Assembly: GCA_038496445.1 (NCBI GenBank)
Contig: JALMLS010000074.1
Span: 1 to 64,000, forward strand
DNA: 64,000 nucleotides
Direction of reading: 5' to 3'
Source of the DNA: Trichosphaerium sp. ATCC 40318
Taxonomy: Eukaryota > Protista > Tubulinea
The translations under genes and the position numbers were made by a program. Positions within the stretch are counted from its first letter, which is position 1; each line of letters begins with the position of its first letter. Shown here in pieces: positions 8,483 through 62,373 of the stretch. The notes under the pieces were generated by a model. That model was given only the letters and a program-made list of their open reading frames with translations. It searched no databases and had not been told where the DNA came from.

Positions 8483-11400
8483 ATGGAACATTCGTCTCGT
8501 TGGCTCGTTTGTGTGTGCGCATTAGTGTTCCTCCAAAGCGTGGTTGCGCAACCATTTGAGACGCGGTGCTTGCGTTTCAACTCCCGTGATGTTGATTTCA
8601 CAGCAGCCAGTACGTTTATTAACTCGGAAGAATGGAGCCTCGTTTAATTGGCAGCAAACTTTTCTCATTGCACAAGCCATTAATTTGCTAGAAACAGCTC
8701 GCACTTCGTTTTACTTATTCTCGTAGCGCCTGTGGCAGACCCACCCGAGACATACATAATCCCAAAAACGCGGTTCGACTTCACCTTAAGATGCTCAACA
8801 GAACCTCTTTGTGTGAACCCTGGTCCTTTTAGCACGGATCCCGCTGATTGTTCAAATCTGCCTTCATTTGGCAGTAATATACAAATATTCAATTGCGCGC
8901 AGTTCGGTACAGTAGTGTTTTAAAAACATCACTAAAAAACCTCGATGGACCTTATTTTATTAAAATCCTTCCTTTTTTGCTCTTTTGTTCTAACTAGCGT
9001 TATCGTAGGTCCTTATGATGTAGATGGTGTCTCGTCAGAGTTATCATTCGATTTCGACCGTACAGATGGATTAGATGATCCAGAGGCACAAGAACAGTTT
9101 TACGTCAACAATGGGCGCATACCTATACTCGGTGGAGGATCAGACACTGATAGGCCAACTCCAAGAGTAATACGTGGTGTTAGTGCCACCGGACAAGAGA
9201 CGTGCGCTTTTTGGATCAAATAGCGCTAGTTGACGTTATTCACATTTTATTTAGATATTTTTTTAACGTGCGAGGCCTCTCAAGTGAATCAACTGACGGT
9301 TTCTTGGGCGAAGCACTTCAAACAATGGAAATCCGCGTAAACTACTTGCCAAACCTTGGTACTTTAATTTTGCAAGCAATGAGTGCTAAGATTGATTATA
9401 GGACCTTCTGGAACCGATACTACTACACTTAATGCACCTTTCCCACGAATGACATCTACAACTAATGATTTTGATCCAACCACGACAGAGACTAGTTTCT
9501 TTATTGTGCAACACTCAGTGATTTCTTTCTCACCATGGTATGCTTCTAGAACATTGTTACAAGTTGTTTTGAACCAATCCGCTAACTCCACCCAGTACTG
9601 GTGCCGAAGTCTTACAACGGATCCCGCGCTGGCAGAGCGGTGTTGAGCAGTGTGATTTCTCTCCTTTGACAGTTCAGCCACAATGCTGTGGATCATCTCA
9701 GACCCTGGACTCAGATGACTTTGATTTCAGTGATAATGAGATTATTATGGTTTCTAATGGTTCGTAAACGATAAATTGCTGTTCTTTTCTTTTTCTTATT
9801 CTTTCTGTAGCGTTTCTCGTTCAGGACGTGACAAATGACCCAACTCAATGTCCTCAACCTCCAGCTGCTCCAACCCCACCCACAACTGCACCAACGCAGG
9901 CTCCGACAACTGCATCACCTACCACAGTACATCCAACAACAATACCTCCATCAACAATGCCACCTACAACAGCAGCACCAACAACAGTAGCTCCAACTAC
10001 CTTACCACCAACTACGTTGCCGCCAACGACTCTCCCTCCGACAACTCTTCCTCCTACAACGTCGCCACCAACTACTTTACCACCAACGACATTGCCGCCA
10101 ACGACATTGCCACCAACGACAGCGCCTCCTACAACTGCACCACCAACAACTGTTCCACCAACCACTCAACCTCCAACACTTCCACCTGCCTTTCCAACAG
10201 TTGCACCAGCGCCAATAGCTCCAACAAGCTTACCACCAACAACAACACCGCCAACAACAGAGTCTCCAACATCTGCTCCAACTACTGTGATGCCTACAAG
10301 TACTCCAACAAAAGCACCACGTATTTGTCCTGGTAGAGGTTATTATGGTGACAACTGTGATTGCTACATTTTCGCTTTCCTAGATTGCTCTGATCGTCTA
10401 CCTTTGCCTGATACGTATATTGCTTGGTTTGGTTACAGCTTTCATTGCAAGAACGTGAGGTCACCAATACCAGAGTCTGTAGAGATTCCATTTGGAGAAC
10501 ATAACATGATTTCTCACTTCGTACGTGGTTATACATAACAAGTCAGACTTTTATTGACTGTTTTAGACTGATGATGTACCGACTACATTTGTGCCTGGTA
10601 AGCATAGATTTGTATATAACGTTACATACGTAAAGTACAACGAGTCTAGCCATGGACCAACATGGTCTGTTCATGGACGTGATGCTATTGATTGTGAGCC
10701 TCCAGATGCTTTCTGTGAGGTCAAGAAGACATTGTATGATGCTTCTCAAGCTGGTGAAGAGCCACCAGTAATAACAAGCGAAGAAACAAGGTACAAAAAC
10801 AATTAGCGTTGTGTTTGGCTTTTCTAATCAATTATTTCAGTGCGGCGAACTTCTCTAGCCGTTTTCCAGACGTAGACGACTACGCTTTACGGATGGTTTC
10901 AGTAGAAACTATTATGGAGCTCTCTCAAGAGCGTCAAGAGGCTGAAGCGCTTATTTTCACAGAACCTGTAGATGGTATTCCTTCATCACGTCATCACGCT
11001 ATTGGTCATCTACCTGAGCAACAGTATTCTGTTACCTCTGAACCTCTTTGTGATATATTAGCAGTTAGAGTAGAAGCATCTGATGCTATTTGCGTTGATA
11101 TTGTAGAAAACAAGTACGTAGCCAGCTCTTACAAAAATGGTCTTTTATTTTCTTTACTTACTCTTTTTTACCAGAGATACCACCAATTTACGAAATATCT
11201 CAGGATGTGCTCTCACTAAGTTTCATTATGAGCCACGTTACACTGCAGAGGTTAAAATGGATGTAGGATTTTCTCCTGTTCCTCAAATGTGGCTTGTTAC
11301 TGTTTCCACTACGAGTACTGAGCTAGTGTACTATGACATCAATGTAGAGTGCTATACGCAACAAGAATGGACTATCCACCTTGCTGAGAGCGCTCAAAAC

Positions 11401-27371: not shown

Positions 27372-27923
27372 ATGCAAAATACCATCAACATAGATACTAA
27401 AAGACTCAATTTACGAGAGTTAAGGCTTAACGACGCAGAGGCTCTACTATCGTATCGTACAAACCCCAGTGTATTAAAATATCAAGGTTGGAACCCTTCA
27501 GGCATAGAAGAAGTCAAAGACTTTATAAAAAAGAACAATATTAAACCAAACACTTCTAATACGTATCTACAGCTTGGTATAACTGAGAATACATCATATA
27601 ATACTTTGATTGGCGATTTCATGCTTCATTTTCTAGAAGATGGCAATCCACAGTGCGAAATAGGTTATACTATAGCTCCAGAGTATCAGGGTAAAGGATA
27701 TGCCACTGAAGCTATTATTGGTGTTGTAGAATACTTGTTTATTGTTTTGAAGAAGCACAGAGTTTTTGCTTCTGTAGACCCTAGAAATGGAGCGTCTATG
27801 CGTGTTTTGGAGAAGGCTGGGTTTAAAAAAGAAGCACACTTTAGGAAAAGTATGTTGTTCAAAGGTGAATGGGTTGATGATGTCATATTTGCAATTTTGT
27901 CAACTGACATTAAAACAACATGA
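27372..27923 (+). CDS. Intronless RimJ/RimL-family GNAT N-acetyltransferase
   Basis: IDTKRLNLREL, EIGYTIAPEYQGKGYATEA (acetyl-CoA motif A), NGASMRVLEKAGFKKEAHFRK, KGEWVDDVIFAIL. Confidence 0.93.
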   Translation: MQNTINIDTKRLNLRELRLNDAEALLSYRTNPSVLKYQGWNPSGIEEVKDFIKKNNIKPNTSNTYLQLGITENTSYNTLIGDFMLHFLEDGNPQCEIGYTIAPEYQGKGYATEAIIGVVEYLFIVLKKHRVFASVDPRNGASMRVLEKAGFKKEAHFRKSMLFKGEWVDDVIFAILSTDIKTT

Positions 27924-44154: not shown

Positions 44155-47100
44155 TTATGATTTTGTTGTTGTCTTTTTAAGTTTTTTCTTTGGTCTTGTT
44201 TCGTTCTTTACTACAGCTGAACGCTTCTTACTATTCTTCTTAGAAGCAGAAGGCTTCTCACTAGTCTTATACTTGCTTAGCTCTTTCTTTAATTTAATAT
44301 CTTTCTTTCTATTCTTTTCACGTTCTTCCCGCTCACGTTTTTCCTTTCTCTTCTGTCTCTGTATCTTTCTAGCTTCCATTTCTGCTTCTGCATGAAGGAG
44401 TACTTCCATGTTACCTTTATCAATCACAATACCATCAAACTGAGGTGCAATATAACGACCATGTGTCCAACCAATCTGAAAAATAAAAATTAGTTTCTTT
44501 CTACCTCAAAAATCAACACAAATCTCATGCTGAATTACTTGTGTTACTTTCTACTATAGTAGATAAATATGCTTACCATGGCCATACCAAAATCTATATT
44601 ATTTTTTTCACATATTCGTTTAAGCCTCCATTGGCGACCTTACAAAAAATCAGCCAATCCAAGAAAAAACAAACAAACAAAAAGTAACGTTACCTTTGTA
44701 CTCATTCTTGACGTGTACAGCGCCAGGTGGTAAAAATTGTTGAGGTATAAACATATAAACATTACCGTGTTCGTTCTTTGGTACAATACCCTACGCTCAA
44801 AGATAAGAATCAACAGAAAAAAAAAAAAGGAAAACAAAATGGTATCTTCTTCAAAAAAAATACTCACGTCTTTAGTAGGCTTTGGCTTGAATAACTCCAT
44901 TTGCCATAAACCATAGTACTTATAATCATACTTTGCATCAGGATCAACTCCTTTCTTCTTCCTGGTCATCTTTCTCTTTATTATGTAAGCTTTCTCTCCC
45001 TTCTAAAAAGCGTACACATTAGACTTGTTTAAAGAAAAAAATGAGAAAAAAGCGAAACAAGCTAAGGACGGCCTCCAAGAATTTACCTTTGGTACACGGC
45101 CTATTTGAAGCCAGTACATCTCACTATGAAGCTTTTGCATATTTCTTCTTGGGTATATATGCCAATCCTTCTTTGTATAATCAGTAAACGTTCCAAGAGA
45201 ATCTTTTGGAAAAACATCAAAATAAGTCGAAATATGCTTCTCCAAAACAAACCTAAAGAACAACACGTTACAAACAAAATTACGTACAAATATACTAAGG
45301 ACAAAACCAATACAACAACCAAGTATCATAACAGTTTTTGTCTCAAAAAATAAAGAACAAAGACGTACTGAGGGCTTTTCTTCCAAGCTGCTTCTGTTCT
45401 TGGAAAAGGTTGTTTAATTATTTTCTGATAAATTTGCTCATCCTCTTCTTTAAGTATAGCCTAAATTTATCTTATTACTAATACGCCTCAATAAAATAAA
45501 TCTATTCTTAACGTAATAACGATCCAACATACCAAGTAGTTAAAGCATCTATCATAAGGTGTATTTATTTCTTCCAAAAACTTCTTGACAGAATCTTGAT
45601 TAATATGTCGTCTCCTGTTCACCAATGTATTAACAAAAAAGGTATAATCGATACCAAAGTACTGAATTAATCAACGTACAAACAGACTTGCTCCCAATTA
45701 TCAACATAGCGTGGTGTAATATCTTTGACTTCAAAAGGCGAAAATCCCAAAATATATCTCACAGATGTTGATGGTTGTATCATGCATATATCATCTGGGT
45801 CACCAACCTTCTTCGACCCAAAATGAACACCTAAAATAAAAAAGCCATTAATAAAGTCTAACACTCAATCAAAACTAACAATTCAAAGAAAACATGACAA
45901 GACTGACTTCAAAAGTCAAACAAAAATAAAATCACGAAAACTTGTCACGTACAATTCCATTTCCTCTGTTTTGGAATCCAAATCTCACACCAGCATTCTA
46001 ATTCTATACAATGTAAGATGAATAAAACAAAACTATTGAATAGTAAAAGAACAAAAGTAACAACAAAGCTTACCTTTAAATACAGTAGTATCAGCAACTG
46101 CCCGTTGTTGTGTTTCTAATCCAGCAGGTTCCCAAGGATCCATCACAACACAAAACCGAGTGTACAACCCTACACTACGACACAACGCAGTGAATAACTA
46201 AACACAAACATTAAAGAGAGAACATTCACTTATAATAGACACGCACAATGCAAGCAACCTTGTTTGTCACTGCGTCACATGAAATGAGATCCATAAGTTC
46301 GGAAATGTTCATTAAGGACTTATAGTCTTTAAAAGTTTCCTAATGGATAATAAATACTAACGCACGTGATTTGAAATGACAAACGTGATAATCAAATGTG
46401 TTCTTTTTATAAACACTGTGTAACGTACGGGATCATCAATGACAAGTGGTGAAAAGCCTGAGGCTTTTGCATTTGTTCTATCAATATCGTATTGTTCAAC
46501 AAACCATTTTGTAAGAGCTGTTACCTTTGCACTTATTTTAGTGTTTCTCTCGAATAACTTTGTTATTCGTTTTGGTAGTAGTGAATACATAGAACACTAT
46601 AAAAGTAGGTAAGTACACAATTAAAGCGAACAGGAACGTTCAGTGTAATTTACTGACAAAAACAGTGAACAAACGAAATTAGTTACCTGAACTAAAGAGT
46701 CATCAGCCCAACCGCTACACTTTTGACAGTATTGAATAATCATTCTCATATGAATCATATGTAAAGCACGTGAACTTTGCCAAGATACAATACGTTTTTT
46801 CCAATATTTATTGATATTTTGTCGTTTAATGTCTTTCTTTGTTTGTTGCTCACTATTATCAAAAAAAAAGTTAACATTCAAGTACTCCAAGCCAAGAACA
46901 GTGTTTAATGAAGTACTTCAAACATCAATTGAATGAAAAAAATCGCAAGCAACAAAATAAGTAAAAAAACCATAAATCACGTGACGATCACGTGTACACC
47001 GTTTGACCTTTACGTACATTTTATCGAGTGTTTTATCATCAACATCAACAGCATCTTCACCTGAGCAACGTTAGATAAAGCAGAAAAGAGACTTAACAGA

Positions 47101-47635
47101 AGATTTTTTTAAGCTAACATAACTTAACTCAGTAATCGCGCGTAAAATTTTTAAAACCCGCGTAACATTCTAGTTTACATACCTTCCCAGTCGTTCACCT
47201 CTTTCTTCTCAGTCTTAACGTCCGTATCCTCGAACAAAGAATCGCCTTCAAAAAAAGAATCATCTACAAACTCCAAGGATGTCTGAGACTTTGTTTTAGA
47301 GTAGCTCAGATGAGCTTTATGTTTACGGGCGCTTGTCTTGGAAACTTTCGTTTTAGCTTTCTTTTTGGGCGTGAAACTCACATCCTTGACATCTAAAATA
47401 GCGTTTAGGATAACTTTAAACGCAATCGATGTAATTGCTGCAGTTTTTTTTGAAGTGTGAACGAAAGAATGCCCCTACCTTCTTCCTCCTGGCGTCTGCG
47501 TTTCTTCTTTGACTTCACACGCGGTGTTACAGTATTCTTGGTCGCTTCCGCTTTAATAAGCGTTTTTGTCTTGGCTTTACGTGGTATACTTCTACGCCTA
47601 GCGCGTGGTATCTCTGGTTCTACTTCTCCACTCAT
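44155..47635 (-). CDS. XPC: XPC/Rad4 nucleotide-excision-repair damage sensor, multi-exon
   Basis: KDITPRY; PFPRTEAAWKKSP..FVLEKH (BHD1); IYPRRNMQKLHSEMYWLQIGR; YGLWQMELFKP; GIVPKNEHGNVYMF..FLPPGAVH; PQFDGIVV (BHD3); basic coiled-coil tail. Confidence 0.9.
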
Positions 47636-48065
47636 TTGTCCGATCGCGGGGATTTAAAAAAGCGAAGTGACAAAAAGTTTGAATTAAATCTATTGACCAT
47701 CTGCGATGAGATGACTTGTTTGAGCTAGTTTAGTTGTACAGCGTACGGCTTCATATAGTAGTGGTAAATGCATGCATAAATACGGTTTAAAACTACAGTA
47801 GACGAAAAGTTTACAACTTTCAAAAAAAACAATTGTGAAACAACTACAGCGCAGCTGTCGCGGCTGTTGTTATGCAGAACATCGATTCAAAACGTTGACA
47901 CGTTGGTCAAGATTTGGCGCTATCTCGAACAAAATCAATGCTTTAAGCTTGCTCGCTCGTTATCTTAAACGCGCATACACCTTACTTTTAATCCACGTGT
48001 AGCGTCTAAGTTCATTTTTTTGCGTGGAGGAAATGATAGACTATTTCAAAAAAAAAACTTGTTTT

Positions 48066-50590
48066 TTACTCTTTGTTTTCTTCTTTGGCCTTTTTTGCTT
48101 CGACAATCTTATCGTACATTGTCCTCAATAGCTTATTCTTTGGATGTGCTCTGATTGCTTTTACAATAGTCTTCTTAGCATCAACTAAGTTACCCAAGTT
48201 GAACTGTGCTTGGCTCTTTCTGTACAGACCTAAAAAACAGTAAAAAAAAACATTCGCGAAAACCTCTTGTCCTGAAGCTTACCTTTCAAATTCTTTGGTT
48301 CTGTCAATAACACTTGTTCACTCGATGTTAAAGCACCTTCATTATCACCTAGAAAACAAGAGTGAGACGAGAAAAAAAACGAAAGAAGATCAAAAAAAGA
48401 AGAAGAAATACTTCATACCTGTAAGCAAACAAGCCTGAGCAATGTTATTGAAACACGATAATTTAAGGCCTCTAAGAGTATCTTTTTGAGGTTTAGTCAA
48501 GTTCCATGTCACACGTAGAAGAATAAGAGCCTAAACAGAGAATCACTTCATGAGAAATCTAGACATAAAGAAAATACTAGTACATACCTCAGAATACGAG
48601 TTCACAGCTGACTGGTAATTCTTTGTTTTAAAAAATACGTTACCCTCATCTTTAAGGTCTGAAGATCTCTCTAGCTTTTCAGACATTGATTTATACTCGC
48701 TATTCATCATAAGAACAATAGGTTCCATCTCCTCCTAACAAAGAAAAGTTAACCAAAAAAAACTAGCGAAGAAAAAGAACTCACTTTTTCTGCGATTTCT
48801 TTGGCAGATATAGGCTCTTCGTCATTAGTTTTAAAATCTACATTAGCACCAGCTTCGAGAAGGTAGCCTATTGTTTGTATTCTACCAGAAGTAACCTAAA
48901 AAAATTCCTTAAGAAAACAAGGCGCAAGAACATCTTGTAGCTTACTGCATGGAAAATAGCATAGGTGCCATCTGGCGCTTGATAATTGACTTCTGCTCCA
49001 CGATCAACAAGAAACTTACAACACTCTGTATATCCTTCCGAAGCAGCCATGAATAGAGGTGTGTAACCTTAAGACAAAGACGTGAGTTGTTTTTAATGAT
49101 AAAAAACCCTGAAAATGAAAAAAAAAAAAAAGGAGTGCTCCCACATACCACGTTTGTCCTTGCAGTTAACTTCAGCGCCTTTATTGTGAAGGAGTCTAAT
49201 GATTTGCATTAAGTTATTAGATACAGCAATATGCATTGGAGAGCATTGCATATCCTAAACTATGAGTTAGGTTTCAGAAACAAAATCTTTTTAAAAAAAA
49301 CCATACGTCGTCTTTGATGTTAGGATTTGCACCATGGCTGAGAAGCAAGTCGGCTGTTTCAGTCATACCATGCTGAACCAAAAGAAATAATGCAGTATAG
49401 CTCGTTTTATGATCAATATCAGCACCTGAAAGAAAAAGTTAATACGTGTGAACAACACGAATAGTTGTTCTGTTCGTTAAAACAAATTACCATAATCTTC
49501 GATGAGCATTCTTACAATCTCGTCTTTGTGTCTGTGACGCGACAAACAAGCTGCCGTGAGAGGCGTGTATCCCTAAATGGTATCAGAGACATCATCGTTA
49601 TTAACTAGTTAATAGACATTGCAAAAAAGAAAACATACTTGAGCATCTGAAGCATTTACAAGAGATTTAGCGCCATGATCCAAAAGAAATTTAACAACTT
49701 CAGGAGCGCATTTTCCAGCAGCCTTATGCAAAGCTGAACTCTTTTCACCGATAGTAGAGTGAATAGAAGGATCAGCGCCTATAAACATTCCATTAACAAA
49801 CACAACAAAGCTTCAATGAGAAATCAAAAAAATCAGTCCCAAAAAAAAAAAAGAACAAAGGAGTACCGAACTCTGTGATCATCCATTTCGCAAAGTCGTT
49901 CGATTTACCATCGTGTAACGCAAGCATAAGTGGTGTACCAAGTATATCATCAACTTTATTAATATCACAACCTCTTTCTATTAGATAACGGAACATCTAA
50001 GGCGTTTTAGCTGTGATGCTAAAAAAAAAAGATTTGACGGTTTTCGTTCATCGTCTCTTTGGTTTATCGTACGTTTTTATGTTTAATCTCTGCCATTGCA
50101 GCCAGATGCATAACACGCTCATCCTTTGATGGGTCTACTCCAGCTTGTTCAATAAGAAACCTTGCAATACCAAAGAATGCACGTAATACTGCATATCGAA
50201 GCGGGTTGTGCTTTCCTAGGGAGGTTTTAGTAATTTGGTAAACTGAAACATGTCACAATCAGTTAAAAAATTGTTTAACATGCGTGAGAGGTGTTAATAG
50301 TAGATTCTTAGGTGCTTCAATTGACAATAAGAGCAGTTGGAACAAAGTAGGTGGCAGGAGCTTTACGCCATATAAAGATTGGCGTAGCGAGCGTACCTGA
50401 TACGTAGTTTGGGTCAGCGCCCTTTTTTTTAATCAAATCTTCAACTACAATTTGATTTCCTAGTTGAACTGCCTACAAGGGAACATAAGGAATCAGTGAG
50501 TATAAATCTAACAATCACCTCAATAAGTTGCTCATTTTTAGTTAGCGGCTTCTTTGGTTGGTCTGATTTTTGGTTAGCTTGGCTGGCCAT
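48066..50590 (-). CDS. Ankyrin-repeat protein with C-terminal TPR domain, multi-exon
   Basis: Ankyrin motifs GTPLMLA, SALHKAA, YTPLTAA, YTPLFMAASEGYTECCKFLVDRGAEVN; TPR SDLKDEGNVFFKTKNYQSAVNSYSEAL...FNNIAQACLL...GLYRKSQAQ. Confidence 0.9.
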
Positions 50591-51542
50591 TGCGAAGGTG
50601 CGGTTATTAGCGCAAATACACAAAGAAATAAAATTTCCGTCAAATCTCGTCGTTTTTTCACTCAACTACAAGACCATACTATCGCATGGAATTGAACATA
50701 CCGGAACCAGATAAGGTGCTCGCGTGAATACAATACTTGTACTGATTTTTCTAACCGAAAACAGGCCAAACTGCCAATATTAACGGATAAGGAGTTAGCG
50801 GACCTATGTGAGCAACTCGATAAGTTAGTTGTATTAATTATTAGCGGTTGATAACGATTTTTGTAGCCAACACAATGACAAGGATAGATTGCGCTTAATT
50901 AACGCCGCTTCGAGAGCCCACAGCGTTTACTGTGTACGAATTAAATATAATTTGACATCACGCAAACAAAACACCTAAAACCAACCCTCAACGCTATTTT
51001 AATGCAATCCGAGAGTAAAATAACCGTTTTTCTTAGGAGCAAGTCGCAGAACTAATTCGTGTTCAACGTTACGGTAACGTCTCATTACGCATTAACGAGT
51101 GCTAAATCTACTATTACCTAGGTGGTTCTACAGTTGACACTGCTATCAAACTACACCCACGTCTGATGGACCCAGAGAACTTTAAAGAGTATGTTATACC
51201 TGAGTTTCAATTCCAAGAGGATAAAGATAATGTTCTAAAAGCTTTGAAGCTTTCATGAAGGCTTGAAAATCAATAAATTTTCGACTTTTTTTTTATCACG
51301 TTTTCCACGTTTTAGATACAACCAATTACGCGTTTATGACACTCAAGTTCGGTTTTGGTACTGTACATTCCTACTTTGAGGTGTTATATGAACATACACT
51401 GATTAGAAACGGTGAATTGTTAAAATGGTGTTTAAAATATGTTCACTACGTGTTATAGGATTATTTGACGCAGTCTTAAGGCTTTCTTCTTTTTATAAAC
51501 GGAAAGTTCCTTTTGTAGTCAAACAAACACAAAACACTAACA

Positions 51543-52642
51543 ATGCGTGCAACAACTGTTGTTTTGGTTTTACTATGCATTACTGTATGCATAAGCGCAC
51601 GCCCTTGGAAAAAATACTCCTACGGCCAAAAACGTCTAAGCGCCTGCGCTCGCTACCTCAAATCAAGAATTAAGACATGGGCAGTTGCTGCAATTACAAG
51701 GGACAACACAAACTTGGTGGCTTCATCCCGCTTTGCGAAGCTAGAGACTAGTATAACTATCAACAAGTGTACACTAGATTCCGAATACAAAATCGAAGTA
51801 GAAGGCGTGTATAGACAATACACCGATTACACCAAGACTTGCCAAAAGAATGCAGGCTTCGAAGCAACGCTACAAGGTTCAAAAGGCGACAGGGGTCTTA
51901 TTGCACTAGTCAATGGTGGAACTATTGAAAAAAGCTCTCTGGGCTATACAGATGCTGCCGAAGAATGTCGTAGAGATGCTGCCAGCCAGCAAACCCGCTT
52001 TAACAATCGTACGCAGCTACACCGGTCTTTTTATGTTTTTTTTTTAAAGAACTACTTTTCCAACAAAATAGTACTAAGTCCAAAGCCCTTAGTGATAGCA
52101 CAAAGCGATAGAGCAATCGCTGCTAACCCTCGCACTTATACTTCACGTGTCAGTCGTAAGATTCAAAATAGACCACAGTATACAGGTACATACTTGTTTT
52201 AACAGAAAGTGCTAAAAGCACGATACAATAATTTTTGGATTGTGTTTTGTGAGGTTTCCTCATTTAATATGTAGCTTCCACATCTTCCTCATCTTTTGAA
52301 GATCAGTACTGTAGTATTCAATGGAACGCAAACGATATAAACAGGATTATAAGAGTGGCATCCAATTACGTGAGGGGAACTCTTGATAGAAGAAATTATG
52401 TTGGTGCAGGTGGTAGCCAACACAGACAGCCTACACGTGCCAATCAACTCGCTTGTAAAGTGGCTTATGGAAAAATTGCTAGAGTGACTCTTCGCACTTA
52501 CGGTCTTTGTAATAACTATAGATACAAAACTCCTGACAAAGCTTTGCAAAAAGTGTGTAAGGTACAAGTAAATACTAACACTTGGGCTGTTAGTGGACAT
52601 TGTTACGCTGTTACACCTCAAAAGGTGTCCTGCAGTGCTTAA
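51543..52642 (+). CDS. Secreted basic Cys-containing hypothetical protein, 3 exons
   Basis: Signal MRATTVVLVLLCITVCISA; ORFs 51543.. and 52355..52642 are joined by short GT-AG introns; ends ...PQKVSCSA*. Confidence 0.7.
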
Positions 52643-53309
52643 TTGCATAAAGTAACCTCTAATAAACACATACTCGTTTATCGAAGTCAAGGCTTTGTCT
52701 GGAACCCTTTAGCTTTCTGTACTACGTTGTAAGAACGGCAGGGTGCATAAATTTTGACCTATTGGTTGTTTACTTATGACGTCATAAGATTTTGCCCAGG
52801 CAACGTGCCAACTGTTTTATTTGTTTCACATTTTAGCCCAGTTTGCTGCTAGCTAAAGGCCCTGAATACAGTAGACCGTCCATAATTTGTTGCGTTTCCT
52901 CCACAGTTGGTAAGCGTGTTTGCAGTTTTTTTTGGAGGTATTAATAGTAAACTAGTTTAAAGTCACAAGCGGTTTACGGAGTAAACTCCGCTGGTTATAA
53001 ACCGTTTTTTTTTGAAGGTTTTCAATTCTTTCAATTAGAGTTTGAAAGGGCTTGGCGTCATGGTAGCACGTGTTCGTGATTTATGTTTTAAATAGTATGG
53101 ACTTTATTTTCTGACATATTTTGAAACCCGACGATATTACGACAAGACTGAAATAGAATGGAAATTAAAACCCATTGTTATTGATTGTATTTATTGTTGT
53201 ACGTATATTTTCTGTACAAATGTATGTACCATTGCGAAACGAAGTATTATTTTGAATTAAACTCAATGTAATTTTTAGTTTAAAGTTGTTACGAAACAGG
53301 AAGCAACAC

Positions 53310-55386
53310 ATGCGTCCTTATGATACTACAAAAGAGTGGGAATCGTTCGAGAGCTATGCTATTGCCCAATACCCAGACCTGGCGTCTATGAAGGAAAGCA
53401 TGCTGGTGACAGGTACGTAGATAACCTTCAGACTACAAGAGCGAACTAGTGTCATTTATCGGCTAATGTTGTCGATGTTTAGATTTTCGGCTACCTGACA
53501 ACCCGATCGTTTATTCAAACCGTGAGTATTCTCTAGGCTTTTAATTACGTGCCATCACGTGATATTAATGATCTAAATCGTCAGCTAATATATTCTAATT
53601 ACAATTAGCGGCATTCGAAAAACTCACGTTGTATACTAATGAAGAGATTGTTGGGAAGAATTGTAGGTTCTTACAAGGTCCAAGTACAAATGATAAAGAT
53701 GTACAGAAGATAAGAGATGCGCTTGTTACAGGAGAAAGAATAACAGTGGTACGTGTTTATTTGATAATCATTATTAACTAGACGAACAAGTTTCAAAATT
53801 CTCTAATTGTGTTCTTTTTTTTTGAAGGAGTTGTTGAATTACAGGAAGGATGGCGTACCTTTCTGGAATAAGTTTGAGATGATGGGTATCCGAGCTGATC
53901 CGGAGGATGATACAACAATCACTCATTTTGTTGGAATACAGCTAGATATTACTCTTGTAAAGCAAACTATAAACAAACCAAAGCTGTGGTCAACTGAAGA
54001 TGTTGCAATGTGGGTTGGTGCTAGAGATCCGGGGATGTACTCTCCGACTTTTCTGGGTGCTAACATTAACGGTCGTACTCTTTGTAAAATGAGTACGTTG
54101 TTATATCAAAACAACCTTGCCGGAGTAACACGACAGTCAAATCACTTGTTTTTTCTTTTTGCTACAACCAAATTTTCTTACGACATTAATGAAGGGGCTG
54201 ACAACATTTAGGAAAAAAGGAGCTTCGAAAACGTGTTGGTATGGACAAACAATCAGCAAAGGTTATGGAAGTACACATTAAGAATCTAAAAAAGCAGCCA
54301 AGTAAGACTTTAAATGCAAGAGCCTGCTCAAGCCGTTTAATGTTAACAACAAAATCTGATGCTTCTTTTTTTAGACAAGAGGAAAACACCACGGAGTTTA
54401 TGTACACTTTTCGAAAAAACAAGAAAATGAGAAGCTTATATTTCCTTCTAGCTCGTTTTGTTGTTAAAGTACACTATGGAGAAGATACAATGATGGTATA
54501 TATTCTTGGTACTGATACAAGAGAAACAATGCTTACGAGGTATAAAGCTCAATGTGCTTTCTTCTTTTTTTTTTTCTTGCTCTTATTGATGTTTTTAGAG
54601 CTGTCACGTTCTTTCCTGAACAAGAACAACTTGATCCTATCGAACTTAGTCTAGTAGCCGATTCAATGTCAGGTGCTGTTTTCAATGCCGACGATCAAAA
54701 AGAATTTGGACTCGTGTTGTACGTTGGAGCTCTGTTGCTTGTTTCCGATTTATTTATTGGTTTTTTTTTAGAGGTCACTTGAAAGCTGGTAAAGTTTTTG
54801 AGTTCCGTATAAGCGCCGTTTCGGATCAGTTTATGTTAACAGAGCAGAGTAACTCAGATGTGGCGATATGTCTAATCTCTCGCGCAGGATTAATTGTCTA
54901 CACTAATGAAACTCTTAAAAAACTTGTCGAGTAAGTCTTCACCCCTAACTTGCTGTTATTATATAGTAACACGTAATTCAAGCCGTCAATTGATTGGGCG
55001 TCCCTTTAATAAGCTTGCGAACATGACACTGTGCACTGACATGAAGAGCGAAGGTGAGTTGTACATGTACAAGATAAGATGTTTGCACGTGTCTCACTTC
55101 TTTTTAGAGCAACTCTGTCAGCTGAAAACATCTACAACATTTCGTCCGTATGTTGTTGCGACTTGTTCTTGGATAAAAAAGAGGAACATGTATTTATGGA
55201 CAGCACACTTGGCTGATTCAGATCCAAAACGAACAACTTCAAGCAGGAAACTTAAACGAGAAAGACGTACCAAAGATAAATATACATCTACCTCAAAATC
55301 TAGTTCACGTGCGTACTGTTTAACTTGAAGAGAGTACGAACAAGCTGATAATTATTACATAGGTCATCGTCGTCATCGAGACTAAA
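53310..55386 (+). CDS. LOV-domain blue-light photoreceptor with SAM, PB1-like and PAS domains; about 11 exons, 3' end approximate
   Basis: Spliced LOV: SMLVTD|FRLPDNPIVYSN|PAFEKLTLYTNEEIVGKNCRFLQGPSTN...|ELLNYRKDGVPFWN...HFVGIQLDIT. SAM: KLWSTEDVAMWV...YSPTFLGANINGRTLCKM|RKKELRKRVGM. PB1-like: FVVKVHYGEDTMMVYI...NADDQKEFGLVL. PAS: DVAICLISRAGLIVYTNETLKKLVDRQLIGRPFNKL. Confidence 0.9.
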
Positions 55387-56690: not shown

Positions 56691-59383
56691 ATGACTTTTT
56701 CTGTTTGGCCCGTGCCTATGTCAATATCTCCTGGCCATCTCGTAATTATTTTACTGCTTTTTGGCGTAAATCACTATGTTTACGCTAATATTACGCCATA
56801 CTTCGCCGCACGCAGTTCAGGTTCAAGTTTAATATCTTTTTTCGATATAGACGAAAGCGTATATCCTCCACAAGTCTATTGGAACCAACAATACCGTATG
56901 TTACGCCCGTAGAATTGCAATTTTCATTTTGTAAAACCAAATTACCAGTATACCTTTTTTCTCCGTTTTGTCATAATATTCCTCGCGTGGCGTGCAGTAT
57001 TGCGCTTGTGATTTTAAATAGGAGTGGTTAGCCATTTTAATGCTATGTTAAGGGGATCCAAACCAAGACCAAACAATAGATGAAGTCTGGAGCGTTCCTT
57101 CGGATAATTCAGAAGAGGCAACATTACTTTATAGCTTTAGAACACAAGGTGACGTAGAAGAGAGCGTATCATCTTTCTGTGCTACACGCGGTGGTGTTTT
57201 TGTTCTTTATAAGCCAGGTATAATGGGTAGCGAGGCACGTGACTCTAAGAAAGGAAGGTTGAGTCAAATCTTGATGGCCAACTTTTCTTTCCTTTTTTAT
57301 ATGCACATTTAACTTACCCTTTTGAACAGTTGTGGCATGTTACCGAGAGTGGTGGCGCTACTTTGGTAGATGCCACTTACCGTCCCTCAAATGCTTATGC
57401 TTTTTCACCTTTATCTGATACTGTAGTATTCGTTGCGTTTCAAATGACGATGGACTCTTATTTTCTTTTGCAATCAGATTTTCCACCAACTGGAACTATG
57501 CAAGTCTTAAAACAACTTACTAGCCGGACAGACGAGAGCGATCAGAAACGTGTCAATGTAGGTGACAACACAGCTGGTACGTAGCAGTATATTTTCCACT
57601 TTTATCCAAAAAAATATCACGTGATTTTTACCAACATTGCACGTGCGTTAGAACTGTTTTCAAAAGAGGTTTTTTGAAGAGAACTTAATTAAAAAATCTT
57701 ACTTAGGATTCACATACTTTCCTTTGGATCACATTGCGAAAACAGAGAATTAGTAAGTGCTCTGGAGATTATATTCTATTTTAACTCTTATTATTTAATA
57801 GCTATTTTGTATTTGGTTTCAATATGGTTTCCGATGAAACAATGGCTGATAACCAAGTTGTTTTTGGAAGATGGGATGATACTTCTAATGTTCAATTTTG
57901 TGATATTTTTGATGATAAGTTTGTTGACGGTTTTGCTGTTGATGCAGATAACGATATTGTTGTTGTTACTGCGTTTAGCAAAGATGATTTAATACCTTAC
58001 TTATTAATGATTGCAAACGGTAATTGTCACGTGGTACAAAAGTATGATGTGGGTCACATGCAACCGCTTGTAACAACAGTAAAACAAAAACCAAACGGCA
58101 ATATCGAAATTGTTGCTGCTGTTCGTGATGATGATCTTAAGAATCAAACTCTTGTTCTATACGTACTAGACGAATCAGGTAATGAAGTAAGACCAGAAGA
58201 AGTAATATTCGCAGTTGAGGAAGAATACGACATTTACGAGCTTGGAGTGCGTTGAAGCGATTCTGACTTGTTTTTAACATTTTTTTCTCCTACAGAGCTT
58301 CGAAGATTACTGGCTTGTTGCATACCGTGAGGTTGTTGGTAGACAACATCTTGTTATATCTATCAAAGGAGACGGATCAATAACAAACATCACATCCGTA
58401 GAGCTATTCCCAACCTTCTTTTTTGATCCATTAATTTCAATTGAAATACGAAACGACTTTTTTACTTTTAGCTTTGTATCAATGACACAAGCAGGCACGT
58501 GCCTTCAATAATTTCTTACATACAATAACTTACTATTAATATAGAGGTTATTGGTGGTTACAGTATCGATAGTGTAATGCCTATTGATAGTACACCATTC
58601 GAAGGCGAACCATTAATTCCTTCAGTTCGTATTGCTTCAGGAAGAAATATTTTTGCTTTACTTGGTTCTGCTGGTCAGAGTGATGTCTATCAGCAGAATA
58701 TATTCGGGTATAATGCTTCTCAAATTGTGGTTCCAACTTCAGCGCCAACGACTTCAGTTCCACCTACATCAACACCAACAGCTTCAACTCCACCACCATC
58801 AAATCCACCAACCAGTGCGCCTCCTTCTATGGCATCCACAACGCAATCTCCAAGCCGTTCTGTACGTTATTTTTTATCAAAGCAACGAAAGTTGCTTTTG
58901 CAGTTGAACGTTTTCTCAGTTTCTTATGTAGCCTTTTTCTGTATTGTGTGATGGAGGATCTATTACTAGTGATGACTGCGCGTACGCCTATTCAAGCTTG
59001 TTTCTTTTTCTTATGGGTGAAGCGTTACAAGCCTTTCTAATTTTTTTACAATAGATGCACAACAGATGTTTGTCAGTGCTATAATCCTAATGGAGATTGT
59101 GACTGTAGATCTTCAACACACTGTTCCGGATCGACCTCACAGAATGCTTATGGCGGATCGAACGGTATTTTCGCTGCGTCATGGGTAAATAACGGAGAGG
59201 TAGGTCAACTTGAAAAACCAGAAACTAAACTGATTTTTTATTTAGGTTTTTTGTGGTAGTGTAGAATCTTGTATTTGCTCTCCTATGGACTTTTCGAGTA
59301 CCCAAGGGAGATGCCATAGGCAACAAGCAAGATATTTTTTGTGTTGGGCGCCTGATCCGGAACGTCAGTGCATCGAAGGATAA
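56691..59383 (+). CDS. Secreted multi-exon protein: beta-rich (propeller-like) body, Pro/Thr/Ser stalk, C-terminal Cys-rich module
   Basis: Hydrophobic N-terminus (HLVIILLLFGVNHYVYA); acidic beta-rich exons; stalk VPTSAPTTSVPPTSTPTASTPPP; final exons CTTDVCQCYNPNGDCDCRSSTHC...CICSP...CWAPDPERQCIEG*. Confidence 0.7.
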
Positions 59384-61800: not shown

Positions 61801-62373
61801 ATGACTGAATACAAGCTAGTAATTGTTGGCGGAGGCGGTGTAGGCAAATCAGCTCTAACAATCCAGCTAATGCAAAACCATTTCATTGACGAATACGACC
61901 CCACAATTGAGGATTCTTATCGTAAACAAGTTGTTATAGACGAAGAAGTAGCGGTTTTGGATATTTTGGATACAGCTGGACAGGAAGAATTCTCCGCGAT
62001 GAGAGACCAGTATATGAGAACAGGAACAGGGTTTATACTTACTTACGACATCACGAACTCACACTCCCTTGATGAGCTCCATCAGTTCAAGAATCAGATC
62101 ATAAGGGTTAAAGACGACGATAATGTGCCTATGGTACTTGTTGGAAATAAAGCTGACCTTGAAGACAAACGACAAGTCTCAACAAGTCAAGGCGAAGCAA
62201 GAGCAAGAGAATTTCGCTGTCCTTTTTTTGAAGCGTCAGCGATGACTCGGATGAACGTTGAAGAATCATTTTTTGAACTTGTTAGGTTAATACGTAAAAG
62301 GACTGTACCTGAGAAGAAGGGGAAGAAATCAAAAAAGGATAAGAAGGGAAGGAAGAAGTGTAGTATTCTCTGA
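61801..62373 (+). CDS. ras: Canonical Ras GTPase (Dictyostelium RasG/RasD-like), intronless
   Basis: [46 protein letters not shown], polybasic tail and CaaX CSIL*. Confidence 0.97.

Follow-up and report, generated by a model that had tools for sequence, protein, structure and literature searches.

The window (the whole 64,000-nucleotide stretch of DNA that was analyzed) contains a real and expressed amoebozoan gene for a LOV-type blue-light sensor at 53310..55385 of the + strand. The coding region consists of 12 exons with 441 codons and a stop codon: 53310-53412 (exon 1), 53483-53521 (exon 2), 53609-53748 (exon 3), 53828-54092 (exon 4), 54212-54301 (exon 5), 54375-54401 (exon 6), 54452-54539 (exon 7), 54599-54718 (exon 8), 54772-54930 (exon 9), 54983-55053 (exon 10), 55108-55308 (exon 11), and 55363-55385 (exon 12), all on the + strand. 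The 11 introns are all of the GT..AG type and range from 50 to 119 nt. Evidence for the gene model comes from a 1236-nt spliced transcript contig of the public run X1, which covers exons 3-12 with zero differences in the five pieces listed and spans each of introns 3-11 (nine of the 11). At intron 2 (53522-53608), a 9-nt overhang of the contig, ATTCAAACC, is identical to the last bases of exon 2. Intron 1 (53413-53482) was placed by homology, and its junction restores ESMLVTD, a motif found family-wide. Spliced with the joints of the transcript contig, the exons read through without interruption for 441 aa, starting at the ATG at 53310 and closing with a stop codon that ends at 55385. A preliminary description of this DNA had recognized the gene and set its end at 55386, one base too far. 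It had also remarked that the ORF track lacks the exon encoding NCRFLQ, which is trivially so, because the ORF containing this exon is 50 aa long and the default cut is 60 aa. The transcript passes through the SAM and PB1 exons and leads into no catalytic domain; its coverage ends ~100 nt beyond the stop codon, and no further domain follows the PAS domain and the tail.

The protein was absent from the protein collections searched, where its best match was P0001 (48% identity). Because of this absence, P0001 was used as a stand-in for the fold work. The 441-aa protein is co-linear with P0001 over residues 7-404 (48% identity) and with P0241 over residues 6-400 (35% identity), and these end-to-end alignments bear out the proposed domain order of LOV-SAM-PB1-PAS. 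When Pfam was run on single exons, it detected the LOV domain, half of the SAM domain, and a weak PAS domain. A Foldseek search with the whole four-domain model of P0001 was dominated by LOV and PAS matches and left the other domains uninformed.

The protein begins with a helical cap (residues 6-28; 53325..53393, + strand) that carries a conserved YP(x)L motif and lies directly before the LOV core. Residue P21 of the cap is near-invariant in the family alignment A1. In the P0001 model, the cap is formed by helices 7-19 and 21-25 with a pLDDT of about 90. The LOV domain that follows (residues 29-136; 53394..53953, + strand) is spread over four exons. Its PAS_9 match came in two halves from the window exons (22.3 and 20.2 bits), and the exons matched the solved phototropin-2 LOV2 domain with an E-value of 1.3e-11 and other LOV structures with an E-value of 3e-7. 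The best single-domain Foldseek matches of the P0001 model were LOV structures, with a TM score by target of 0.85-0.93. As the preliminary description had it, the domain is complete. The motif GKNCRFLQG is found at 53653-53679 (residues 63-71), and the TGT codon of the adduct cysteine, Cys66, lies at 53662-53664, exactly where it had been placed. The other motifs it had named are conserved as well: NYRKDG at 53837-53854, FWN at 53861-53869, and FVGIQ at 53927-53941. Thus all the flavin-pocket motifs (NCRFLQ, IRDA, NYRKDG, FWN, and GIQ) are present. The Arg of IRDA, the Asn of NYRKDG, the Asn of FWN, and the Gln of GIQ align with the same residues of solved LOV domains. With this full set of photochemistry residues, the LOV domain is predicted to bind flavin.

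The SAM domain (residues 144-214; 53975..54379, + strand) begins at residue 144, ~8 residues past the end of the LOV core near residue 136, and no J-alpha-like helix lies between the two. This close spacing had been pointed out before. The window SAM scored 44.8 bits (conditional E-value 6e-16) against a SAM model of the family from which its own clade had been left out, while the exon-4 half alone reached 18 bits with Pfam SAM_2, under the cut-off of 20.5. The family SAM profile matched solved SAM domains (liprin-beta, SHANK, caskin, DGK-delta, and SARM1) with E-values down to 3e-16. The SAM domain of the P0001 model consists of five helices spanning residues 149-209.

A beta-grasp domain comes next (residues 222-304; 54401..54811, + strand), with VKVHYGED at 54463-54486 and DDQKEF at 54690-54707. 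It is best read as a divergent PB1 domain of the basic type. The Pfam PB1 model found no match on the window exon pieces, and the window sequence scored -2 bits against a PB1 model of the family that excluded its own clade, which is not significant and made a profile-profile comparison necessary. In that comparison (hhalign), the clade aligned full length with the family PB1 profile over 70 columns (probability 88%, E-value 3e-6). The family profile in turn matched solved PB1 domains with an E-value of 6e-7. Pfam PB1 exceeds its cut-off in the relatives P0003 and P0018 and matches at an E-value of up to 0.01 in 15 of 38 family members. The domain model of P0001 has a PB1 topology, the ubiquitin-like beta-grasp order beta-beta-alpha-beta-beta-alpha-beta (pLDDT 81.8). 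Its best Foldseek match was the aPKC-iota PB1 (TM 0.74/0.77), and TM scores against the PB1 domains of aPKC, NBR1, and p62 ranged from 0.74 to 0.78; Ras-association domains (Rgl2, TM 0.69) and ubiquitin matched as well. The position and the motifs claimed earlier for a PB1-like domain are in place. The assignment depends on comparing profiles and on the fold of P0001 (48% identity), and it is less certain than had been implied.

Which PB1 surfaces does this domain retain? The beta1 lysine, K226, is present in VKVHYGED, at a column that is Lys in 28 of 28 relatives. The acidic OPCA face has mostly been lost: among the seven columns that carry D/E in 50% or more of 27-28 relatives, the window protein is acidic in two. 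This count depends on how so divergent a domain (9-19% identity) is aligned, and a shift could regain 1-2 acidic positions. The first acidic cluster reads A/S/A. P0001 and P0241, the two closest relatives, likewise lack most of the acidic face. Head-to-tail PB1 homopolymers need an acidic OPCA motif (type I/A) plus a basic lysine (type II/B). With two of the seven acidic columns left next to the invariant lysine, a canonical head-to-tail PB1 homopolymer of the window protein is therefore unlikely, and a one-sided, basic-type PB1 that would bind acidic-face PB1 partners fits the sequence better.

The C-terminal PAS domain (residues about 314-404; 54839..55217, + strand) lacks the LOV cysteine motif. 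Its own scores are weak: Pfam PAS gave 15.5 bits on exon 9 (E-value 0.018), and the family model built without its own clade gave 9.8 bits at residues 319-359. The co-linear relative P0241 scores above the cut-offs of Pfam PAS (49.4 bits), PAS_8 (26.9 bits), and PAS_12 (27.6 bits), the family PAS profile matched solved PAS domains with an E-value of 1e-10, and residues 320-402 of the P0001 model form PAS-like strands and helices. A second PAS domain is present, as proposed. Look-alikes of the post-LOV part in the ESM Atlas were generic bacterial PAS clusters only, all below 0.9. The protein ends in a polybasic Ser/Thr-rich tail (residues 405-441; 55218..55382, + strand) that is predicted to be disordered and has 15 K/R and 4 D/E in its last 36 residues. 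The tail of P0001 is comparable, with a net charge of +14 in the last 40 residues and a pLDDT below 50.

In agreement with the preliminary description, Pfam on all exons revealed no kinase, cyclase, GAP, or DNA-binding domain in the window protein, whose frame closes at 55385. Pfam likewise found no Ser/Thr kinase, bZIP, or GATA zinc finger together with LOV on the exons, in the close homologues, or among 38 family members. Inspection of the ORF translations between 46000 and 53400 for upstream RasGAP or N-terminal PB1 exons revealed nothing RasGAP-like. A gene of the LovA type, which carries these domains, was rejected on this inspection, and the window protein has 28 residues ahead of its LOV core. 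The upstream region (46000-53400) has a separate + strand ORF at 51543-52202 and ankyrin-like exons on the minus strand. Elsewhere in the window, an intronless Ras ORF is present at 61801-62373; its named best matches are amoebozoan (Balamuthia, Mayorella, Physarum, and dictyostelids), and an MMETSP transcript matches it at 87% identity. An Rfam scan of the window gave no matches.

The protein belongs to a populated family. Members are found in Acanthamoeba, Balamuthia, Thecamoeba, Filamoeba, and Protostelium. The order LOV-SAM-PB1-PAS is shared by at least 29 of 246 fetched proteins; other forms in this set include LOV-SAM-PB1 (13 proteins) and LOV-SAM (20 proteins). In Protostelium and Planoprotostelium, a RasGAP domain follows LOV-SAM, and P0021 has a partial RasGAP-PB1-LOV-SAM-PB1 arrangement. 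The window protein has the family pattern of cap, LOV, SAM, PB1, and PAS in this order within about 400-500 aa, and it is nested in the family tree: it groups with P0001 (support 100/99), then with P0241 (99/94), and then with the LovA-type P0021 (95/89). It differs from most members at its N-terminus. A myristoylation-like MGxxxS/T start is present in 30 of 38 relatives, and the window protein lacks one. Its predicted start is MRPYD, and the gene model, of which the transcript covers exons 3-12, has no in-frame MG; an upstream exon may restore an MG start. Overhangs of contigs in run X1 indicate that a second LOV gene is expressed.

How might light act through such a protein? The explanation we favor, with moderate confidence, is that it is a short-form amoebozoan LOV-SAM-PB1 photoreceptor, ending in PAS and not in RasGAP, that functions as a soluble, flavin-binding, light-regulated adaptor in hetero-oligomers. 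Because the set of LOV pocket residues is complete, blue light would be expected to form an adduct between FMN and Cys66. The resulting change in the LOV beta-sheet would pass to the conserved N-terminal cap and to the directly joined SAM domain, a route suggested by the ~8-residue linker without a J-alpha helix. This shift would then alter the choice of partners bound by the SAM, PB1, and PAS modules. Likely partners are proteins with acidic-face PB1 or SAM domains, above all paralogues of the protein and those relatives of the LovA type that carry RasGAP. The polybasic tail may direct the protein to anionic membranes or to the nucleus, and most relatives appear to use a myristoylation-like N-terminus for such a role. 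A more specific version, possible if rather unlikely, is that short forms co-assemble at membranes with RasGAP paralogues via SAM and the one-sided PB1, so that light would set local Ras activity by recruitment or release of the GAP. The link to RasGAP paralogues comes from family association; no such gene was seen in the window.

The preliminary description had proposed a different mechanism, in which blue light gates homopolymerization of the protein via two head-to-tail interfaces, SAM and PB1, yielding filaments, networks, or condensates of the protein alone. The family as a whole lends this some credit. The consensus PB1 combines the invariant lysine with an OPCA-like DxDG...DxD motif, so canonical members could be two-faced, and among solved SAM domains, those closest to the family profile (SHANK, caskin, DGK-delta, SARM1, and ETV6) oligomerize. 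Furthermore, the window protein has no other output domain. However, one of the two proposed interfaces appears to be incomplete: the basic lysine of PB1 stands, but the first OPCA acidic cluster is gone in the window protein, P0001, and P0241, with only two of seven columns left. As for the other interface, sequence does not reveal the polymer surfaces of SAM domains, many of which occur as monomers or heterodimers. The four-domain model of P0001 has a pTM of 0.67, which suggests that the domains pack compactly within one molecule, although this is still compatible with polymers. We consider such a double polymer unlikely. Because the basic lysine is kept and the acidic face is mostly lost, an adaptor is the likelier reading.

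Two other readings start from the tail and from the beta-grasp fold. If the tail is a nuclear localization signal, as its bipartite-NLS-like K/R runs allow, the protein could be a nuclear light-dependent co-regulator, lacking its own DNA-binding domain, whose LOV and C-terminal PAS domains pair with transcription factors, PAS-containing or otherwise, much as in WC-1/WC-2 or VVD. The LOV ... PAS order is WC-1-like, several white-collar-1 models were among the AlphaFold DB matches to P0001, and the membrane-directing MG start of the relatives is missing. These white-collar matches, however, do not exceed a TM score of 0.25, and only the PAS folds account for them. The myristoylation-like start of most relatives points to membranes, and the RasGAP of related forms is a cytoplasmic or membrane signaling output. 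This reading seems improbable to a similar degree as the double polymer. Alternatively, the beta-grasp could be a Ras-association or Ras-binding domain and the protein a light-modulated binder or scaffold for Ras-GTP. The Ras-binding domain of Rgl2 ranked second in the Foldseek search (TM 0.69), the RalGDS RA and Raf RBD domains also matched, relatives are fused to RasGAP, and the acidic PB1 face is lost in the window clade. Yet beta-grasp folds all cross-match at such a level, and PB1 domains had the best E-values and the top TM scores (0.74-0.78). The clade profile aligns full length with a family PB1 profile that itself matches Pfam PB1 and solved PB1 domains, and the lysine that defines the basic type is invariant. 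A Ras-binding role is very improbable, the least likely of the readings considered here.

What the locus adds should be seen against a family that was already known in outline. To our knowledge, the LOV receptors that have been studied signal to a kinase, a DNA-binding domain, an F-box, an RGS-type module, or a short helix. The searched literature names only once the widespread amoebozoan family that pairs LOV with only SAM, PB1, and PAS (or RasGAP), and it contained no bench characterization of the LOV-SAM-PB1 family, LovA included. Searches for functional studies on LovA or Physarum, on LOV with RasGAP, and on Acanthamoeba LOV proteins found none, and the papers found on LOV with sterile alpha motifs dealt with engineered STIM1 tools or unrelated work. 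The suggestion that the family is known in outline and uncharacterized in amoebozoans thus holds. The suggestion of a new signaling logic does not, as the window protein is one more member of an architecture that is already known. The genome finding is a solid annotation and not the discovery of a new kind. It contributes a gene model that a transcript verifies over most of its length. It also provides evidence for a sub-clade in which the PB1 is one-sided and a polybasic tail replaces the myristoylation-like start, and for a genome that carries two or more paralogues. If light alters the assembly state, the family would explain blue-light behavior of amoebae and would supply compact parts for optogenetic recruitment. 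If co-assembly with a GAP is true, the photoreceptor logic would lie purely in regulated oligomer composition, and the two proteins would be a ready-made optogenetic pair for clustering or recruitment.

Among other LOV receptors, phototropin, aureochrome, WC-1, and VVD have the same LOV photochemistry residues as the window protein, and the best solved-structure matches of the window LOV are phototropin LOV2 domains. In contrast to these receptors, the window protein lacks a kinase, a bZIP, and a zinc finger, contains only one LOV domain, and has a SAM domain where the J-alpha helix would be. Its conserved cap recalls the N-terminal helices through which VVD and aureochrome dimerize in the light. 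Fungal proteins of the BcLOV4 type consist of RGS-DUF-LOV with a polybasic membrane-binding element. They resemble the family in LOV, in the theme of a G-protein regulator (in the wider family), and in the polybasic element; the domains and the lineage differ, and homology is claimed for LOV alone.

The closest parallels are amoebozoan. Short amoebozoan relatives, such as an annotated 'SAM domain containing protein' of Acanthamoeba castellanii Neff (P0212) and transcripts of Thecamoeba, Filamoeba, and Soliformovum, share the four-domain order, a similar length (about 440-500 aa), and the conserved cap. They differ from the window protein in having a SAM-PB1 linker of 40-80 residues, an OPCA-like acidic motif, and an MG start, none of which it has, and most of them lack its polybasic tail. 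The named member of the family is LovA of Physarum polycephalum, predicted as RasGAP-PB1-PAS_9-SAM-PB1 (Schaap et al. 2016, PMC4758236). P0021, which has the LovA architecture, is the sister of the window clade (95/89) on a long branch. LovA and the window protein share a core of LOV (NCRFLQ), SAM, and PB1 in the same order. Compared with LovA, the window protein lacks the RasGAP and the N-terminal PB1, has a SAM-PB1 linker of only about 10 residues, and has a C-terminal PAS domain followed by a polybasic tail.

The window, which has a GC content of 37.5% and is eukaryotic with short introns in this region, carries an expressed gene on the plus strand (53310-55385, 12 exons). Its 441-residue product has the domain order LOV-SAM-PB1-PAS, PB1 being the most probable reading of the third domain. 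A 1236-nt spliced transcript contig in a public sequencing run (X1) matched plus-strand positions 53609-55308 with zero differences across the listed pieces, and coverage in the depth table of this run extended to ~55495. The contig skipped nine GT..AG introns. Its opening nine letters (ATTCAAACC) do not adjoin 53609 and repeat the 3' end of the exon assigned to 53483-53521, evidence for a tenth intron. Joining the exons to the ATG at 53310 gave 441 open codons with a stop codon at 55383-55385. The first intron (53413-53482) had no read support, and its junction restores ESMLVTD, which is conserved family-wide; the start codon lies outside all X1 coverage. The coordinates and motifs in the preliminary description proved exact, with the Cys codon TGT at 53662-53664 and with NYRKDG, FWN, FVGIQ, VKVHYGED, and DDQKEF all present.

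Domains were scanned on individual exons in frame, and the spliced protein served only in locally run comparisons. Exons 3 and 4 matched Pfam PAS_9 in two halves (22.3 and 20.2 bits). Compared with solved structures, the same exons matched LOV domains with the flavin-pocket residues in register: E was 1.3e-11 for phototropin-2 LOV2 and 3e-7 for others. The LOV domain is complete, as had been claimed. The SAM domain read directly after it was also borne out: the second half of exon 4 matched the first half of SAM_2 (18 bits), and residues 144-214 of the spliced protein scored 44.8 bits with a SAM model of the relatives from which its own clade had been left out. The second PAS domain was found in its correct place, though weakly on the protein's own sequence (15.5 bits with Pfam PAS and 9.8 bits with the family model). 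Family profiles for the three regions after LOV were also compared with every solved structure. The SAM profile matched liprin-beta, SHANK, caskin, DGK-delta, and SARM1 (E 3e-16), the PB1 profile matched aPKC iota/zeta, TFG, Bem1, MEKK2/3, Cdc24, NBR1, and p62 (E 6e-7), and the C-terminal profile matched solved PAS domains (E 1e-10).

With exon 4 (the end of LOV and the start of SAM) as the query, a complete HMMER search of 1.84 billion representatives gave 428 matches at E <= 0.001. LOV-SAM fusions are common because, on our reading of the table, about 50 of the 150 listed matches span both halves. A 452-residue protein from a JGI assembly (P0001) aligned with residues 7-404 of the window protein at 48% identity, and a 420-residue MMETSP transcript product (P0241) aligned with residues 6-400 at 35% identity. 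PAS_9, SAM_2, PB1, and PAS all exceeded Pfam cut-offs in two other relatives, P0003 and P0018; a C-terminal PAS stretch of P0018 (PAS_8, PAS_4) was slightly under. Across the 38 aligned members, Pfam at E <= 0.01 found PAS_9 in 37, SAM_1 in 30, SAM_2 in 29, PB1 in 15, and PAS in 30. The proposed architecture recurred in 29 of 246 fetched proteins, alongside LOV-SAM-PB1 (13), LOV-SAM (20), and PB1-LOV-SAM-PB1 (1), a census that shows spread and not independent proof, as its family models contain many of the counted sequences. Named members were exclusively amoebozoan (Acanthamoeba castellanii, Balamuthia, Thecamoeba, Filamoeba, Soliformovum, Protostelium, and Planoprotostelium).

A maximum-likelihood tree joined the window protein to P0001 (100/99), then to P0241 (99/94), and next to the LovA-type P0021 (95/89), whose long branch makes its placement uncertain. 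The SAM-PB1 linker has ~10 residues in the clade of the first three proteins versus 40-80 in other members. A second X1 contig overlapped the window only at 53641-53675, a 35-nt NCRFLQ stretch of 90-95% identity. The flanks of this contig translate to DFERLTLYPK ... GRHTSKDSVE, a peptide of the MMETSP proteins P0002 and P0241 (overhangs compared with the P0241 alignment), so the organism also expresses a paralogue of the LOV gene.

The claimed PB1-like domain was undetectable from the window protein's own sequence (-2 bits with the family PB1 model, the beta1 strand alone aligned), but the profile of its clade matched, over 70 columns, a PB1 profile made from the remaining relatives (probability 88%, E 3e-6). 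In an AlphaFold2 model of P0001 from the 38-row alignment (pLDDT 80.8, pTM 0.67), the LOV core was accompanied by five SAM helices at residues 149-209, a unit with beta-beta-alpha-beta-beta-alpha-beta topology at 220-304, and a PAS-like unit at 320-402; the tail was disordered. The 86-residue beta-grasp unit was also modelled separately (pLDDT 81.8). Its top Foldseek PDB matches were PB1 domains (aPKC iota 1wmh_A, TM 0.74/0.77; also NBR1 and p62), and Ras-association domains (Rgl2, TM 0.69) and ubiquitin came close behind. Because of this ranking, the predicted fold is a beta-grasp with PB1 as its best reading, and a Ras-binding beta-grasp in place of PB1 is a minor and very improbable rival. 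Comparison with 27-28 relatives outside the clade gives a strong hint that this PB1 is one-sided, with a basic face only. The beta1 lysine is invariant in these relatives and is kept by the window protein. Seven columns of the OPCA region, the acidic-face motif, are at least half D/E among the relatives, and the window protein is acidic in two of the seven, a count that depends on aligning a very divergent domain. The first acidic cluster reads A/S/A in the window protein, T/A/T in P0001, and N/K/K in P0241. A PB1 with a basic face only cannot form canonical head-to-tail self-chains and can bind an acidic-face PB1. This argues against the autonomous double polymer, built through SAM and PB1, of the preliminary description. 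The strong hint against a PB1 self-polymer interface is the chief correction to that mechanism, which we now consider unlikely.

An MG start was present in 30 of the 38 family members (alignment A1, P0001-P0242), mostly as MGxxxS/T followed by K, the usual N-myristoylation pattern. Since this start predominates, the family looks membrane-directed. The LovA passages of the Physarum genome paper (PMC4758236) make no mention of such a start. The window protein begins with MRPYD, not MG, and its final 36 residues contain 15 K/R versus 4 D/E. P0001 combines a similar basic tail (net +14 over 40 residues) with an MG start; most other members lack the tail. Judged from its composition, the tail may serve membrane targeting or be a nuclear signal. 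The latter would suit a nuclear co-regulator pairing with PAS partners, but the membrane-directed look of the family argues against this role, which seems as unlikely as the double polymer. We lean, by somewhat more than an even chance, towards an adaptor: a predicted flavin LOV sensor whose light signal would shift the contacts of SAM, the one-sided PB1, and PAS. Such an adaptor would work within hetero-oligomers together with paralogues, possibly RasGAP-bearing ones; photocycle, partners, and localisation are all predictions of this reading. The remaining weight goes to an explanation beyond these four.

Directly upstream of the LOV gene lies a separate plus-strand ORF of 219 residues (51543-52202) with a hydrophobic, signal-peptide-like N-terminus and no transcript cover in X1. 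Inspection of the ORF translations for 46000-53400 showed no RasGAP-like sequence upstream of the gene on the plus strand. An intronless Ras ORF of 190 residues lies at 61801-62373 on the plus strand. Its top match is an MMETSP transcript (87% identity), and its named matches are amoebozoan, among them Balamuthia rasG-like, Mayorella, and Physarum Ras2. An X1 contig skips 95 nt on the plus strand at 57235-57329, with ends reported as AG..AC and a two-letter slack. Moved by 2, the skipped segment opens with GCACGT and closes with AACAG; it is probably a GC-AG intron in a neighbouring gene (~56712-57500). Two further plus-strand ORFs encode 183 residues resembling, by eye, a GNAT-type N-acetyltransferase (27372-27923; intronless, which is unusual amid the window's intron-rich genes) and 236 residues of mostly PTT/PPTT repeats, mucin-like, before a Cys-containing end (9828-10538).

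The preliminary description guessed rightly that the family was known in outline but uncharacterised. The architecture is already in public databases, the LovA passages of the 2016 Physarum genome paper (PMC4758236) describe the LOV-SAM-PB1 core, and no functional study of the LOV-SAM-PB1 family was found in the searchable literature. The window locus is a further member of this known family and not a new category. It offers a useful starting point for work on a LOV receptor with interaction domains as its sole outputs. Protostelium and Planoprotostelium relatives differ in carrying a RasGAP after LOV-SAM, with a PB1-like stretch between them (family model). The partial protein P0021 has the order RasGAP-PB1-LOV-SAM-PB1, the same as that published for Physarum LovA in those passages (PMC4758236).
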